Below, in pieces: positions 2,634-61,725 of a DNA stretch of 64,000 nt. A program made the translations under genes and the position numbers. Below the pieces are notes generated by a model, which saw nothing but the letters and a program-made list of their open reading frames with translations, made no database searches and was not told where the DNA came from. The DNA lies in the sequence record OQ031493.1, one strand, 5' to 3'. How positions within the stretch are numbered: position 1 is the stretch's first letter; every line of letters starts with the position of its first letter.

Positions 2634-3820
2634 GTTGTTAGTTCCTTACAAATAAACTTGATAACGTGATCACTTACAAATTTCAATGGACCAGAACAAT
2701 TAGATTTCTCAATAGCGGTTTCAGTGTATGAAATTATTTGATTTCCACTTAAGGATAATGAATCAAATAATTCATAAGAGTTATTATTTTTATTCTTAAA
2801 GGATACTGCATATTGACTATTTTCACTATTGATGCAAAATAGGTTAATAGCTGGGATAGATACAGAGTTATCTGAAGTATGGCTATTTTCCGTAATATTC
2901 CAATTACTGTATACAGTGAAAATATTTGCAGCTAATAAAAGGTTGGCATTAACCGTTTCTAAACTAACATACTCCACAGAAGTACCTTTATGCCAATATA
3001 GTTCAATTGGATTAACCCAAGTATACCCAATGGTTTTATAGAAGGCATGCATTACATATTCTCGCCAACGTGTGGGTTTCTTATTATCAGTTAAAACACA
3101 CGTAATATTGCCTGACGGATAAATGTGGTGGATGCTACATGCATTAATTTCATCTCTAACATTAGTTGTTTCAGTAATATTAGAATGATCCTGTTTGAAT
3201 AGCCATTTTAAATGACTATTAGTTGTGTCATCACCTTCCCCATTTGCAATGTCATTTTCTAACCACTTTTCAAATGTAGCTTGTCTATCAGGTGTTGGCA
3301 TTCCCCAATAGGTAGCTAAAATGAAACGATAATAGTATCGAATAATATCATCATCGTTAAGAATATTTTTATCCAGTTTCCAGTGATGTTGATACTCGTA
3401 TACTTCGCTTGGAATATTATTTACTTGATACCATGTATTAATTAATACTTGAATTGTTAATTGCCGAATACTCTCACTTGTTAGAGTGTAATATTCCCTG
3501 CTATGCGGCTCTTCAATTGTCACTTCTTGATCAGTATAACCAATGTATTTAGGTTTACCATCGATGAGTGCAAAATTAACATTCCATGATGTATCATTAC
3601 TAAAAGTGATATTAATAAAACCTTGTTCAAAGCTAGGCTTCACTACGAAACTGACATCATCCTTCTGATATGTCATTTGCGTTAGAATACCAAAATTAAT
3701 TTTAGATGTAAATTCTTTATCGAAGTTATGTTTATAAAGTAATCCTAGTAAACAATCAATTTTATTAATAGTGTGGTTTTCTAATAATAAATCAGTATTT
3801 GTAAGTTCATTAATTTTCAT
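2624..3820 (-). CDS. hypothetical protein (398 aa)
   Basis: Long ORF, AGAGG RBS, TATATTAC motif upstream. Confidence 0.85.
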   Translation of the reverse strand: MKINELTNTDLLLENHTINKIDCLLGLLYKHNFDKEFTSKINFGILTQMTYQKDDVSFVVKPSFEQGFINITFSNDTSWNVNFALIDGKPKYIGYTDQEVTIEEPHSREYYTLTSESIRQLTIQVLINTWYQVNNIPSEVYEYQHHWKLDKNILNDDDIIRYYYRFILATYWGMPTPDRQATFEKWLENDIANGEGDDTTNSHLKWLFKQDHSNITETTNVRDEINACSIHHIYPSGNITCVLTDNKKPTRWREYVMHAFYKTIGYTWVNPIELYWHKGTSVEYVSLETVNANLLLAANIFTVYSNWNITENSHTSDNSVSIPAINLFCINSENSQYAVSFKNKNNNSYELFDSLSLSGNQIISYTETAIEKSNCSGPLKFVSDHVIKFICKELTTCR

Positions 3821-3874
3821 TTTAACCTCTATAAAATTTACAATCTAGTTTTACTTATTGAATAAGCAAACATG

Positions 3875-3882
3875 TAATATAT
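3875..3882 (-). promoter_or_regulatory. phiKZ-type early promoter core TATATTAC
   Basis: gtaatata on + strand, ~55 nt upstream of ORF 3820 and downstream of a terminator. Confidence 0.6.
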
Positions 3883-3921
3883 ATCTTAATTATTTTTTAG
3901 CATAGTTTTTAACAACATAAA

Positions 3922-3939
3922 GCCTCCCCGAAGGGAGGC
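3922..3939 (-). terminator. terminator of sheath-tube operon
   Basis: GC stem, UUCG loop and U-rich tail on the minus strand. Confidence 0.85.
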
Positions 3940-3947
3940 GATATGCT

Positions 3948-4129
3948 TTAGCTTTTTTGGTTAGTACCGACAGTCTGCTCATTCTTTTCAGTTTGAGCAT
4001 TTCGCCGAAGTTGACTAACCAGACCATTGCCAGCCGCAACTACATCGGGAGAAAAGAATGCATTGATATCAAAGTTCTGATCTTGGTTGCGAGTCTTCCC
4101 AGGTGGGACCATCGGATATACTTTTGCCA

Positions 4130-4130
<1 letters not shown>
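3948..4130 (-). CDS. small protein coupled to tail tube gene (60 aa)
   Basis: TAATG stop/start overlap with the tube gene; ends just before the terminator. Confidence 0.65.
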
Positions 4131-5014
<884 letters not shown>

Positions 5015-5042
5015 ACTTTTCCTCATTCTGAAAGCCACCCAC

Positions 5043-7181
<2,139 letters not shown>

Positions 7182-46998: not shown

Positions 46999-48525
46999 TT
47001 AATATTTCAATAGACTATTGATAAAAGCATTAGGGTCATAACGGTTATTTGAAAAAGCCGCCATTACATCACACCCTGGCTGATCTTTAAATCTGATATC
47101 TTCAGGAATATCGAAGTCAGGGAACATTAGTTTAATATACTCCCTAACTTCTTGATCTCGTAGATATGGAATCTCCACCATGTAATCAACGCGACCTTTC
47201 CTTAGAAGTGCTTTATCAATATTCTCAGGATGGTTTGTAGTTAGAATGGTCATAGTCTCATCTAGTGGAACAATGCCATCTAGCCCATTTAATAGAGCTG
47301 ACAAAGTTAATCCGCTAGCTGGTTGTTCATACGTGATTCCATTCTTCATGCACTTCTTTAATTTCCACCATCGGCGAATTGTGGTAAATAATGGATCTTT
47401 TTCATCGGCCCATTTTGAAACACCCAGTTCAGCCATAGCATAAGCACTTATCCCAAAACCTTGATCATCGCTATTTTCATCAAAGATATAGATGGTGTCA
47501 TTAAACCCAACTACAGAGTATCCTTCATAGTCATCTTTAAGATCAACCCATGCAGACGGATATTTTTCAATTAAATCAATAAAAGAATATTTCCTCTCTA
47601 ATTCCTTTATCTCTTTATCTAGTTTTACAGGATCATTTAAAACACGATCTTTAACTGCCGGGGTATCATCGAAATCTTCAATTAGAAGAATATTACCTTT
47701 AGGTAGTGTAGTAAATGCCCGCCTAAGACTATCATTGGTCATAGAGGCTAATGACAGTGCACTAACATTTTTATTAAAATGTGAGGCAATCGCTTTACTG
47801 ATTGAGGTTTTACCAGTACCAGGAGGACCTGTTAGAACACAAGTGAATTTATAGGGTAGTCCACGATCATCGTACCATTTCCGATCAGAATAGAATTCTT
47901 CAATCTTATTAAGGAATTCTTCTTTGATCTCTTTACGCAAAATCACCGTGTTGATATCGCGTTTAGTAACTTCAATCTCATTGCCCCAACGGTTACCATC
48001 CCAATGTGAAATAGTCAGACCCCTTTCATTTGGGCGCCAATGGTAAGCATCTACTAAATCAATAATTAGTTTACTACTCCTAGATAATCCACGGATAGTA
48101 ATATCCATTTGATCTCGACTGGCATTTTGACTATCCCGGCGTGCTTTTACAAACCAGAATAACCTACCTTTAAACAGAAAGAAATGTAAGCCAAAACCAA
48201 CACCAATTTTCTGTTTAGTTGCACTATAACTTTGCTCATCAACATTAGTTGAAAAACGTCGATTAAATCCAGCTAATGGCTGCTTAATATACCATTCCAT
48301 GAAACAATCAAAGTTCTTCTCGTTCAGCCCATTACCCATGTTGGTAATATGTAGACTAACTGTAAACTGATTTAATGCGAACCTAGCTAGTTTACTTGGT
48401 AAGCCTCTTAGAGTGGTCCAGAATAAACCACCAATTGCCATTCCGATAGCTCCACCCATAACCATATTCTTCTGAGAGATATCGATGAACATGGCGTAAT
48501 ATTGCAATAAGGTTTCTATAATCAT
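46999..48525 (-). CDS. BCS1-like membrane-anchored AAA+ ATPase
   Basis: N-terminal TM, FLFKGRLFWF BCS1_N-like segment, GPPGTGKTS, LLIEDFD, LSALLNGLDG, TTNHPENIDKALLRKGRVD. Confidence 0.85.
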   Translation of the reverse strand: MIIETLLQYYAMFIDISQKNMVMGGAIGMAIGGLFWTTLRGLPSKLARFALNQFTVSLHITNMGNGLNEKNFDCFMEWYIKQPLAGFNRRFSTNVDEQSYSATKQKIGVGFGLHFFLFKGRLFWFVKARRDSQNASRDQMDITIRGLSRSSKLIIDLVDAYHWRPNERGLTISHWDGNRWGNEIEVTKRDINTVILRKEIKEEFLNKIEEFYSDRKWYDDRGLPYKFTCVLTGPPGTGKTSISKAIASHFNKNVSALSLASMTNDSLRRAFTTLPKGNILLIEDFDDTPAVKDRVLNDPVKLDKEIKELERKYSFIDLIEKYPSAWVDLKDDYEGYSVVGFNDTIYIFDENSDDQGFGISAYAMAELGVSKWADEKDPLFTTIRRWWKLKKCMKNGITYEQPASGLTLSALLNGLDGIVPLDETMTILTTNHPENIDKALLRKGRVDYMVEIPYLRDQEVREYIKLMFPDFDIPEDIRFKDQPGCDVMAAFSNNRYDPNAFINSLLKY

Positions 48526-49363: not shown

Positions 49364-50236
49364 TTAGATTTTTACAGACCAACTTTGCTCGAATTCCTGA
49401 TATAGGAAATTGTCTGACGCATTATCCCAATTTTCTCGATCAGTTACACCATAATAATGGAATTCTAGTTCAGTAGGTCCACCAACAAAACCATTCTTAG
49501 CATAGCTATAAACTTTGCCATTGGTTAGCTTAATCAGTGTATCCACATAGAAACTATTACGGTTCCATATTTCATTGTGGATGTACTTAAATACCACACT
49601 GTGGATATACTTAAATTGCGCACTTGGTTTTCCGAGTACACTCCAATAGAATTTACGGATACCTATTTCGGTCTTGAAATTAAACTCTCCGTTGCGAATG
49701 TTGTTAGAAACAATACGTGCCAGTTTATTAACCCGATTTTCTTCACCGATTAGATAGATCCCGGAAACACTACATCCATCTCCTATTGATCCATTATTAA
49801 CTAGTGGATCAACACCATATTCATCAGTGAAAATGGTTTTGATAACCTCTTTACCTTCTCGACGCACTAACATATTCAGGTGACCATCTTCGATATATGA
49901 CATATGGCTAGGCTGAATATATTCACTTGTATCGACGATAACATCATTCGCCATTACATTAAACTGTAGATGGTTTACCAGATCACTAATACCTTTAAAA
50001 CGAATGGCTTGGTTCGCTGTATTTAGATCGACATACACCACGACATCAATAATGCCTTGTTTTAGTGATTTGTCATCTTTGTCAGTAGTTGTATCAATTT
50101 TTACGTAATTTTGATATAGTTCACTAAAACAAGATATGATGTCATCATGTAGTTTAATTACATCAGATCCATTTCGTTCAAGCGCTTTAAGCGATACGTT
50201 AAAACCAATACGAATTTTATTAGAACGACGTGCCAT
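49364..50236 (-). CDS. hypothetical protein, paralog of 48522-49307
   Basis: 290 aa; shared GE..VN and N.I.N...D...NG...Y.K patterns. Confidence 0.8.
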   Translation of the reverse strand: MARRSNKIRIGFNVSLKALERNGSDVIKLHDDIISCFSELYQNYVKIDTTTDKDDKSLKQGIIDVVVYVDLNTANQAIRFKGISDLVNHLQFNVMANDVIVDTSEYIQPSHMSYIEDGHLNMLVRREGKEVIKTIFTDEYGVDPLVNNGSIGDGCSVSGIYLIGEENRVNKLARIVSNNIRNGEFNFKTEIGIRKFYWSVLGKPSAQFKYIHSVVFKYIHNEIWNRNSFYVDTLIKLTNGKVYSYAKNGFVGGPTELEFHYYGVTDRENWDNASDNFLYQEFEQSWSVKI

Positions 50237-50695: not shown

Positions 50696-51160
50696 CTAAC
50701 CATTTAAAATAGATAAAGCCTCTATATGCCAATGGTGTATTAGTTCTTCTTTACTAATAATATTATTGAAGTAGTTTAACCGATGTGATACCATTAATTT
50801 AGAATGCATATCGACTTCACTACTTACCTTAATCACCCCAGTCTCTAATAATTGCAGAGAGCCAACATACGCAAATAAAGTTGGTTTTAAATACCAGTGT
50901 TCCCTATATTGTTTTTGATCAGGTACATTTCCTATAATGTAGTCAGTAGAATTACTTCGGTATGCGTAAATAGTTGATTTAGAACCAAGTAAATTAAGAT
51001 CGATATCATAACTCCCGCTTTTAGCTGCAATACATTCAATAACTGATGGGGCCACACATATACGGTTGGTTACACTGTCTTCGCCATCAGCTCTATTACT
51101 TGGAATATATGGCCTTAATAAAACATAATCCCCAAGGTATACTGTCGATATGTGATACAT
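50696..51160 (-). CDS. ADP-ribosyltransferase-fold candidate 1
   Basis: YHIS, L.P, RICVAPS, IYAY, REHW pattern. Confidence 0.45.
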   Translation of the reverse strand: MYHISTVYLGDYVLLRPYIPSNRADGEDSVTNRICVAPSVIECIAAKSGSYDIDLNLLGSKSTIYAYRSNSTDYIIGNVPDQKQYREHWYLKPTLFAYVGSLQLLETGVIKVSSEVDMHSKLMVSHRLNYFNNIISKEELIHHWHIEALSILNG

Positions 51161-51175
51161 AATTAACCTATTTAA

Positions 51176-51703
51176 TTAAAACAGATAACGCTCTGTTACT
51201 GAACGATATTGTGACATGATGTTTAATGGATCAACATCCACTGGTGCTTTAGTGACAGTTAAGCGAGCACCTTTTAAAAATTCACCAATATCTAATTTCC
51301 TTACAGTAACATCATGGATAGTGTTTTTCGTAATCCACTCAGTATCAATGCTATTGTGAGGATTATTATTCTTAATCCATTTGTCAGAGTCCCTAAATGG
51401 AATGGTATAAACATACACAACCATTTTTAAAATATCACTTTTATCGATATTATTTTGACAATAGATTGTAATATCCCTATCAACAGTAGCATATCTATCA
51501 CTATCAAATAACTTTTCGATAGCGCTACCAATACCTAAATAAGATGCATCTTTTTCAGATGACGTTGCATATAGGTATTGGTTAGACTCAATACCATCCC
51601 ACATAACAAGTTCACCAGATCTTTTAAATCCTGGCATTAATTCGTCTTGTTTATACAGAGAACCATGGTAAAGTAATTCTGGTTTATTCATAATAAAATC
51701 CAC
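51176..51703 (-). CDS. ADP-ribosyltransferase-fold candidate 2 (H-Y-E type, Arr/PARP-like)
   Basis: LYHGS, LMPG, YLYATS..K.A, VYVY, NPHN...TEWI. Confidence 0.55.
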   Translation of the reverse strand: MDFIMNKPELLYHGSLYKQDELMPGFKRSGELVMWDGIESNQYLYATSSEKDASYLGIGSAIEKLFDSDRYATVDRDITIYCQNNIDKSDILKMVVYVYTIPFRDSDKWIKNNNPHNSIDTEWITKNTIHDVTVRKLDIGEFLKGARLTVTKAPVDVDPLNIMSQYRSVTERYLF

Positions 51704-60258: not shown

Positions 60259-60716
60259 TTACAATTTCCTTTTAGTTGGATTAAAAATCTGATAAACTAC
60301 TTNNNNNNNNNNNNNNNNNNNNNNNNNNNNNNNNNNNNNNNNNNNNNNNNNNNNNNNNNNNNNNNNNNNNNNNNNNNNNNNNNNNNNNNNNNNNNNNNNN
60401 NNNNNNNNNNNNNNNNNNNNNNNNNNNNNNNNNNNNNNNNNNNNNNNNNNNNNNNNNNNNNNNNNNNNNNNNNNNNNNNNNNNNNNNNNNNNNNNNNNNN
60501 NNNNNNNNNNNNNNNNNNNNNNNNNNNNNNNNNNNNNNNNNNNNNNNNNNNNNNNNNNNNNNNNNNNNNNNNNNNNNNNNNNNNNNNNNNNNNNNNNNNN
60601 NNNNNNNNNNNNNNNNNNNNNNNNNNNNNNNNNNNNNNNNNNNNNNNNNNNNNNNNNNNNNNNNNNNNNNNNNNNNNNNNNNNNNNNNNNNNNNNNNNNN
60701 NNNNNNNNNNNNNNNN

Positions 60717-61130: not shown

Positions 61131-61725
61131 AGCTTAATCCTAATNNNNNNNNNNNNNNNNNNNNNNNNNNNNNNNNNNNNNNNNNNNNNNNNNNNNNNNN
61201 NNNNNNNNNNNNNNNNNNNNNNNNNNNNNNNNNNNNNNNNNNNNNNNNNNNNNNNNNNNNNNNNNNNNNNNNNNNNNNNNNNNNNNNNNNNNNNNNNNNN
61301 NNNNNNNNNNNNNNNNNNNNNNNNNNNNNNNNNNNNNNNNNNNNNNNNNNNNNNNNNNNNNNNNNNNNNNNNNNNNNNNNNNNNNNNNNNNNNNNNNNNN
61401 NNNNNNNNNNNNNNNNNNNNNNNNNNNNNNNNNNNNNNNNNNNNNNNNNNNNNNNNNNNNNNNNNNNNNNNNNNNNNNNNNNNNNNNNNNNNNNNNNNNN
61501 NNNNNNNNNNNNNNNNNNNNNNNNNNNNNNNNNNNNNNNNNNNNNNNNNNNNNNNNNNNNNNNNNNNNNNNNNNNNNNNNNNNNNNNNNNNNNNNNNNNN
61601 NNNNNNNNNNNNNNNNNNNNNNNNNNNNNNNNNNNNNNNNNNNNNNNNNNNNNNNNNNNNNNNNNNNNNNNNNNNNNNNNNNNNNNNNNNNNNTTTAAAT
61701 AAATTTTAATACTAGTTATGGTTTA

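Follow-up and report, generated by a model that had tools for sequence, protein, structure and literature searches.

Two early genes of phiKZ-type phages encode proteins with a predicted ADP-ribosyltransferase fold

The window, that is, the whole stretch of 64,000 nucleotides analyzed here (OQ031493.1), is Pseudomonas phage PA7, a relative of phiKZ; it matches PA7 and further Phikzvirus genomes at 99-100%, and it shares its numbering with PA7. The PA7 deposition is a partial genome with N runs at 60303-60716 and 61145-61693, which are the reason for an apparent GC dip to 0.20 and for spurious overlapping ORFs. Mapping onto the phiKZ genome (AF399011) identifies the pair of ORFs under study as PHIKZ282 and PHIKZ283, hereafter gp282 and gp283. 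Each is present as a single copy in the PA7 record, on the minus strand, within a long same-strand series of small genes and upstream of the gene for the BCS1-like AAA ATPase PHIKZ286. The orthologue of the latter lies at 46999-48525 (minus strand); a PHIKZ286-like ATPase is also found near the gp282 homologue, on its downstream side, in PhiPA3 and directly adjoining it in one metagenomic phage, and knock-down of PHIKZ286 in an antisense screen lowered ChmA (++) and left plaques unaffected (PMC12571901). The PHIKZ284 orthologue (49364-50236, minus strand, 290 aa) gives a sub-threshold Pfam match to the SidC N-terminal domain (E=0.0013, 18 bits for a cut-off of 25). In GenBank, gp282 and gp283 are recorded as hypothetical except for a few automatic labels, of which "recombinase", "phage-associated recombinase" and "terminase large subunit", given to gp282 in OP953026, AP019418 and MT995928, are supported by none of the searches.

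The gp282 orthologue (PA7 gp070, PHIKZ282) is annotated in PA7 at 51176-51691 on the minus strand, with 171 residues and a stop codon, and the ORF can be read from a GTG at 51703 (51176-51703, minus strand, 175 aa). The true start is likely the ATG at 51691, because the PA7 annotation begins there, because the PHROG profile phrog_13483, which spans residues 5-175 of the GTG form, begins there as well, and because the first 18 residues, including the LYHGS motif, are kept even in homologues that share no more than about 36% identity. In the phiKZ reference (AAL83183.2 / NP_803848.2), PHIKZ282 begins at Met19 and counts 153 aa. The stretch omitted by this annotation corresponds to 51637-51691 of the window (minus strand) and to 256554-256608 of AF399011, and the 153-residue form appears to lose strand 1 together with the conserved and presumably catalytic His.

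At least 162 relatives of gp282 were collected, none of which is named and the majority of which reside on contigs as large as jumbo-phage genomes. Cultured carriers comprise the phiKZ-like phages, PhiPA3, 201phi2-1, Phabio and Noxifer, as well as Viktualia, PS119XW-like phages, DT01 and Erwinia phage Wellington, and the protein is conserved across nucleus-forming phages of Pseudomonas and Erwinia. In an alignment of 121 sequences, W31, D32, E35, N37, L40, Y41, Y95, N110, N113, E118 and T121 are invariant, Y41 and E118 being found in 121 sequences out of 121, and His9 is kept in all 119 rows without a gap at this position. No above-threshold Pfam match was obtained for gp282 and 28 of its relatives, the sub-threshold ones being scattered; one of these, of a single relative to ART-PolyVal (E=0.07), was set aside as evidence.

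The gp283 orthologue (PA7 gp069, PHIKZ283) occupies 50696-51160 on the minus strand, encodes 154 residues plus stop and corresponds to phrog_25542. It looked like an orphan in a word-indexed search, and an exhaustive phmmer search gave at least 179 cluster representatives at E<=0.001, with matches covering residues 1 to about 105. The best conserved positions in an alignment of 151 sequences are R33 (99%), D81 and E87 (98% each), W89 (97%), C35, C43 and P17 (96% each), P20 and Y67 (95% each) and H3 (89%). Neither gp283 nor 50 relatives have a Pfam match. Its viral structural relatives are uncharacterized proteins from phages of Rhizobium, Klebsiella, Erwinia and Pseudomonas, along with a 785-aa "acetyltransferase", and this is a patchy, widespread and uncharacterized family of phage accessory proteins.

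A preliminary description of this DNA had drawn attention to a common order of motifs in both ORFs and had read them as a pair of candidate ADP-ribosyltransferase (ART)-fold enzymes. The common order is borne out by the translations: Y8-H9-G10-S11, L18-x-P20, Y41-A-T-S44, V92-Y-V-Y95 and E118-W119 in gp282 are paralleled by Y2-H3-I-S5, L15-x-P17, C35-V-A-P-S39, I64-Y-A-Y67 and E87-H-W89 in gp283. Of the 147 frames in the window with 80 aa or more, a regular expression of this order matches gp282 and gp283 alone, and each shuffled set yields about 0 matches; these figures measure specificity and not independent significance, the expression having been composed after both ORFs were viewed. Furthermore, conservation within each family falls on the motif residues, with H9, Y41, Y95 and E118 of gp282 invariant in non-gap rows. 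Sequence comparison of gp282 with gp283 revealed no kinship (BLASTP E=11, hhalign probability 0.9%, Smith-Waterman z=-0.3 against shuffles), and the motifs may be regarded as equivalent because the predicted fold is shared. In PhiPA3 and in three contigs of metagenomic jumbo phages, the 5 kb around the gp282 homologue contain no gp283-like ORF, and the hypothesis that the two genes form a conserved module was dropped, their adjacency being seen in phiKZ-type phages only. Hence, of the earlier pair, the ART fold stands for both members by modeling, but they are neither homologous nor conserved together, and are best seen as independent ART-fold genes that are chance neighbors in phiKZ-type phages.

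Profile searches were silent as to function: neither ORF has a match in Pfam, NCBIfam or PADLOC, the same libraries and PHROGs returned just PHROGs of unknown function for both ORFs and six neighbors, and sequence-profile searches of the PDB with gp282 and gp283 were empty. The structural models were more telling. The AlphaFold model of gp282 (pLDDT 93.5, pTM 0.86) gave E-values of 0.06 or more with Foldseek against the PDB, yet the majority of its top matches are ARTs. A search independent of Foldseek, against 48,161 representative chains, placed KptA on top (Z 7.6), with CARDS toxin, pertussis S1, Scabin, mouse Tpt1, TreX, PltA, Arr, AvrPphF and DarT1 next in this order. A second comparison gave Z 8.1-8.2, 1.7-3.2 Å, 82-87 residues and 23-24% identity for Tpt1 chains, of which Tpt1 of Aeropyrum pernix (8tg4_A) reached Z 8.2 with 1.7 Å, 82 residues and 23% identity, the match being always confined to the C-lobe of Tpt1, residues 88-186. 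Arr-2 scored Z 7.2, with 110 residues. On the strength of this model, gp282 very probably has an ART fold.

The gp283 model (pLDDT 80.7 overall, core mostly above 88) consists of a confident core, residues 1-116, which forms the predicted ART-fold domain, and a low-confidence helical tail. Its structure search gave just 72 chains with Z of at least 2, and the best 50 of these 72 are all ART or ART-like. The top matches are TreX/TreTu (Z 6.5), pertussis S1 (6.4), Arr (5.9), PltA (5.5) and CARDS toxin (5.5); next come BC2332 (5.3), the detoxified pertussis toxin 6ro0 (5.2) and ParT (5.1), then, at ranks 9 and 10, PltA of PltAB (4z9c, 5.1) and RES (5.0), with AcrIF11 (6kyf) lower at Z 3.5. A language-model search, which sees the sequence only, returned Arr-ms for 30 of the 30 nearest named Atlas clusters of gp283 (0.94-0.95). 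An ART fold is highly probable for gp283 too, if with slightly less assurance than for gp282. The ART reading of the preliminary description is thereby supported at the level of the models, the neighbors of both being nearly all ART-fold chains; the Foldseek comparison it had foreseen agrees in that mostly ARTs come on top for gp282, but its E-values are weak (0.05 or more for both proteins).

To judge by their structural neighbors, both models would have the split beta-sheet core and the strand-helix NAD-binding unit that characterize the ART superfamily. The second motif (LYATS in gp282, ICVAPS in gp283) is predicted as a strand followed by a helix, and a conserved loop further on leads to the conserved Glu, with which another strand begins, a layout which, in the models, is that of ARTs. 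The gp282 model has strands at 6-11, 40-43 and 118-121, which carry H9, Y41 and E118, respectively, and a helix at 46-62. His9 of the LYHGS strand (codon at 51665-51667, minus strand) is the predicted NAD-binding His, as indicated by conservation and alignment starts, and alignment offsets place it on cholera toxin R7, pertussis toxin R9 and Arr H19; these, with diphtheria toxin H21, we take to be the strand-1 catalytic residues of the respective enzymes. Tyr41 (51569-51571, minus strand) would be the middle residue of the triad, and Glu118 of the TEW motif (51338-51340, minus strand), which starts its strand after the conserved loop W105-x-K-N-N-N-P-x-N113, the catalytic Glu, both from conservation and the model. 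The H-Y-E clade is defined by a strand-1 His (H-G-[ST]), a Tyr on strand 2 and a Glu/Asp that opens strand 5. With H9-G10-S11, Y41 and E118 all at the predicted places of this clade, we infer that gp282 has a canonical His-Tyr-Glu set. The placement of residues of gp282 and gp283 in the NAD pocket is derived from secondary structure and alignment starts, assuming a gap-free strand 1.

The putative active site of gp283 is less regular. Its alignments start at M1, which falls on cholera toxin L5, pertussis S1 V7, Arr 17 and diphtheria toxin 19, so that His3 of the strand-1 YHxS motif (codon at 51152-51154, minus strand) would fall on R7, R9, H19 and H21 if strand 1 is gap-free. The R33-I-C35-V-A-P-S39...C43 segment (51032-51064, minus strand) makes up, by conservation and by the model, strand 2 (33-37) and the start of a helix (40-48), and Cys35 sits at the strand-2 position where H-Y-E enzymes carry Tyr, Tyr67 being on a later strand than the triad position. 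The D81...E87 segment (VPD...T.E.W; 50900-50920, minus strand) is conserved and precedes the strand 88-90, and either D81 or E87 may be the catalytic acid. Of a putative H-Y-E set, gp283 has H3 (89%) and E87 (98%), with Cys35 (96%) and no Tyr in strand 2.

Domain fusions and published phiKZ data bear on the context in which both proteins may act. A 314-aa protein (P0246), found on three metagenomic contigs that derive from an ENA assembly and a Logan run, hence from two sequencing projects or more, joins a gp282-like ART domain (6-145) to a C-terminal YAcAr SLOG domain (191-254, E=2.8e-10), and this natural fusion could indicate the pathway. YAcAr SLOG domains of jumbo phages are predicted by Iyer et al. 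(2021; PMC7824862) to be linked to NAD or ADP-ribose, and are listed there with domains that use NAD+ or make ADP-ribose derivatives. In a 1083-aa protein of a metagenomic contig (P0150, positions 2971-6222 of locus L005), two gp283-like domains (431-570 and 736-872) flank a GNAT domain, upstream of which a shikimate-kinase-like P-loop is matched near residues 117-155; gp283-like domains also occur in GNAT- and ankyrin-fused clusters, architectures typical of multi-effector conflict proteins. In phiKZ, both mRNAs increase from 2 min post infection, with RNA-seq counts at 0, 2, 4, 6, 8 and 10 min of 0, 133, 342, 481, 604 and 738 for PHIKZ282 and of 0.2, 218, 550, 842, 1057 and 1333 for PHIKZ283 (PMC10914614). 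Cells pooled at 10-30 min were fractionated on gradients, in which mass spectrometry quantified both proteins, gp282 in the light fractions and the pellet (0.63) and gp283 in the light fractions, fractions 18-20 and the pellet (0.71) (PMC10914614). PHIKZ283 is listed as non-core, and its knock-down in PAO1 left PFU/CFU unchanged and weakly reduced ChmA, the same pattern as that of the macrodomain gene 104 (PMC12571901). As the product of the latter, AdfM (gp104, PHIKZ104), strips ADP-ribose and matters solely in hosts carrying DarTG2 (PMC13309987), the silent phenotype of PHIKZ283 in PAO1 fits a counter-defense or host-specific role.

Taken together, these data are likely explained by two small cytoplasmic ART-fold proteins, produced in the first minutes of infection, that would ADP-ribosylate host molecules. 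NAD+ use, transferase activity and targets are here deduced from fold and conservation. gp282 would be related to the NAD-binding lobe of Tpt1/KptA, here as a protein of its own, and would have a canonical His-Tyr-Glu site. If it works like known enzymes of this class, NAD+ would be held by His9-Gly10 and Tyr41, nicotinamide would leave with the help of Glu118, and the acceptor would be chosen by the W105...N113 loop and the W31-D32...E35...N37 segment. gp283 would be a separate, Arr/Tre-like minimal ART relying on His3, Cys35 in place of Tyr, Tyr67 and Asp81/Glu87. Both would most likely transfer ADP-ribose from NAD+ onto host molecules for take-over or counter-defense, and they probably act independently and not as a complex. 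We are fairly confident that gp282 is an active NAD+-using enzyme, and lean cautiously toward the same for gp283, in both cases as judged from the models. As to the target of gp282, a protein is presumed to be the first candidate, a nucleic acid comes somewhat behind, and a small molecule or plain NAD+ hydrolysis is the least probable of the three.

Several other readings of the same data deserve to be weighed. That the resemblance of fold arises from chance or from a model artefact, the two being unrelated small early proteins with some other function, would agree with Z scores near or under 8, of which those between 6 and 8 lie, as the tool itself warns, in a range where unrelated models may also score, with Foldseek E-values of 0.05 or more and with the absence of any HMM link. 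This reading is nonetheless very unlikely, because the argument for the ART fold is founded on the uniformity of the match lists, on the agreement of two independent models, built from unrelated alignments, whose top rows are practically all filled by one and the same superfamily, on the language model that independently gives Arr for gp283, and on the family-conserved residues, which fall at the expected places on the strands bearing the ART catalytic positions. The ART fold is also found in NADases, in pseudo-enzymes and in binding modules, and one or both proteins could bind NAD+ or an ADP-ribose signal, or act as a scaffold, without transferring ADP-ribose (pseudo-enzyme, sponge or sensor). 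The replacement of the stacking Tyr by Cys and the mere 89% conservation of His3 in gp283 speak in this direction, as do the TASOR pseudo-PARP, IcmQ and AvrPphF among its structural neighbors and the presence of most of both proteins in the gradient pellet (0.63 and 0.71), a hint of large assemblies. But the His-Tyr-Glu set of gp282 is invariant in 121 sequences, some at about 36% identity, an invariant catalytic Glu is hard to square with a pure binder, and D81 and E87 of gp283 are both 98% conserved, which makes a role without transfer rather unlikely. Less likely still, the proteins could consume NAD+ as glycohydrolases or phosphorylases, in the manner of RES/MbcT or Tne2, and thus alter the host NAD+ pool with no macromolecule modified. 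RES toxins, MbcT and Tne2 are indeed structural neighbors, and the fusion of a gp282-like domain to YAcAr SLOG suits the chemistry of soluble ADP-ribose nucleotides; however, the RES/MbcT matches (Z 4.2-5.0) rank below those of transferases, NAD+ depletion is normally an abortive-infection tactic of the host that harms phages, and the place at which ARTs read the acceptor is taken up in gp282 by a long invariant loop.

The closeness of gp282 to Tpt1/KptA calls for two further alternatives. As Tpt1/KptA is the top structural match (Z 8.2, 23% identity), gp282 might be an RNA 2'-phosphotransferase for RNA repair. Pairwise alignment with E. coli KptA (NC_000913.3) sets LYHGS on LYHGT and YLYATS on YVHLS, that is, the LYHG[ST] and Y-[VL]-[HY]-[LA]-[ST] segments correspond (Smith-Waterman z=2.8, shuffle p ~0.02), and KptA-family ARTs are reported from a few group 1 jumbo phages by Iyer et al. 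(2021; PMC7824862). This function is nevertheless very improbable for gp282. Its match involves the C-lobe only, residue 1 of the model falling on Tpt1 residue 88, so that the protein is devoid of the entire N-terminal RNA-binding lobe, which bears three of the four residues of the Arg-His-Arg-Arg tetrad. The position of the fourth Arg is Ser36/Asn37 in gp282, no Arg being present at the position preceding the strand-2 motif. The Tpt1/KptA profile PF01885 has no match in the phage at E-values up to 10. Finally, gp282 has Tyr41 where E. coli KptA has His (in YVHLS, from the pairwise alignment) and Glu118 where it has Val (matched by eye). Alternatively, gp282 could be KptA-derived, have regained the His-Tyr-Glu set and ADP-ribosylate nucleic-acid ends or RNA rather than protein, with 5'- or 2'-phosphates of host or phage RNA in the cytoplasm as candidate acceptors. 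We hold this to be improbable; if true, it would bring NAD+ chemistry on RNA into the host shut-off or transcript protection of nucleus-forming phages. The reading retained is that of two early ART-fold proteins that most likely ADP-ribosylate host molecules.

Among nucleus-forming jumbo phages, phiKZ serves as the model, and a known function is lacking for the majority of its early genes. Two early candidate NAD+-using enzymes offer a concrete entry to host take-over or counter-defense. PHIKZ282 and PHIKZ283 are not mentioned, whether under gene name or accession, in the main text of the papers searched, none of which calls them ARTs, in keeping with the earlier remark that such enzymes are not obviously described for phiKZ-like phages. 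Phage ARTs as such are already known, and gp282 and gp283 are new families inside a well-known superfamily. Part of the finding may have been seen before, since Iyer et al. (2021; PMC7824862) state in general terms that ARTs occur in all groups of jumbo phages. The present analysis defines two ART families that are invisible to current profile libraries, with at least 162 members and at least 179 cluster representatives, respectively, and suggests that the phage probably tags host molecules by means of NAD+, an activity undescribed for phiKZ. Furthermore, the phage also encodes AdfM, and ADP-ribosylation may thus serve both sides of the conflict.

Among known systems, the C-terminal NAD-binding lobe of Tpt1/KptA (8tg4, 1wfx, 9ld3) is the best structural match of gp282. 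Both have in common the LYHG[ST] strand, the subsequent strand-helix unit and a W-[IL]-T strand, and gp282 is distinguished by a hairpin (66-77) and a C-terminal extension (135-171); with a chain that starts at ART strand 1, it falls outside the Tpt1/KptA family. Like the phage proteins, Arr (PF12120; 2hw2, 9iaf, 9iba) is a minimal ART that carries a His on strand 1; it counts about 140 aa and scores Z 5.9-7.2 with gp282 and Z 5.4-5.9 with gp283. gp283 differs from it by a Cys at the Tyr position and by its conserved R33 and C43, and the Arr-ms profile (PF12120) matches neither gp282 and 28 relatives nor gp283 and 50 relatives. The substrate of Arr is a small-molecule antibiotic, of which there is no hint for the phage proteins.

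The TreX/TreTu Rhs toxins and the pertussis- and cholera-type toxins are the top neighbors of gp283 (Z 6.4-6.5, about 97-105 residues) and score Z 6.3-6.7 with gp282, with an identity to the phage proteins of just 8-10%. Cholera- and pertussis-type toxins carry an Arg, a Ser-Thr-Ser and a Glu-x-Glu motif, whereas both phage proteins have a strand-1 His; neither Ser-Thr-Ser nor Glu-x-Glu is present in the gp282 and gp283 family alignments, which sets both proteins apart from the R-S-E clade with its strand-1 Arg, Ser-Thr-Ser motif and Glu-x-Glu or Gln-x-Glu. T4 Alt, ModA and ModB, which belong to the Arg-Ser-Glu class, and AcrIF11 are early or injected phage ARTs and may serve, by analogy, as a functional model for gp282 and gp283. 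Their substrates are host RNA polymerase, ribosomal proteins or Cas8f, and a sequence relation of gp282 and gp283 to the T4 enzymes and AcrIF11 is undetectable. phiKZ relies on its own polymerases for transcription and has no obvious need to redirect that of its host.
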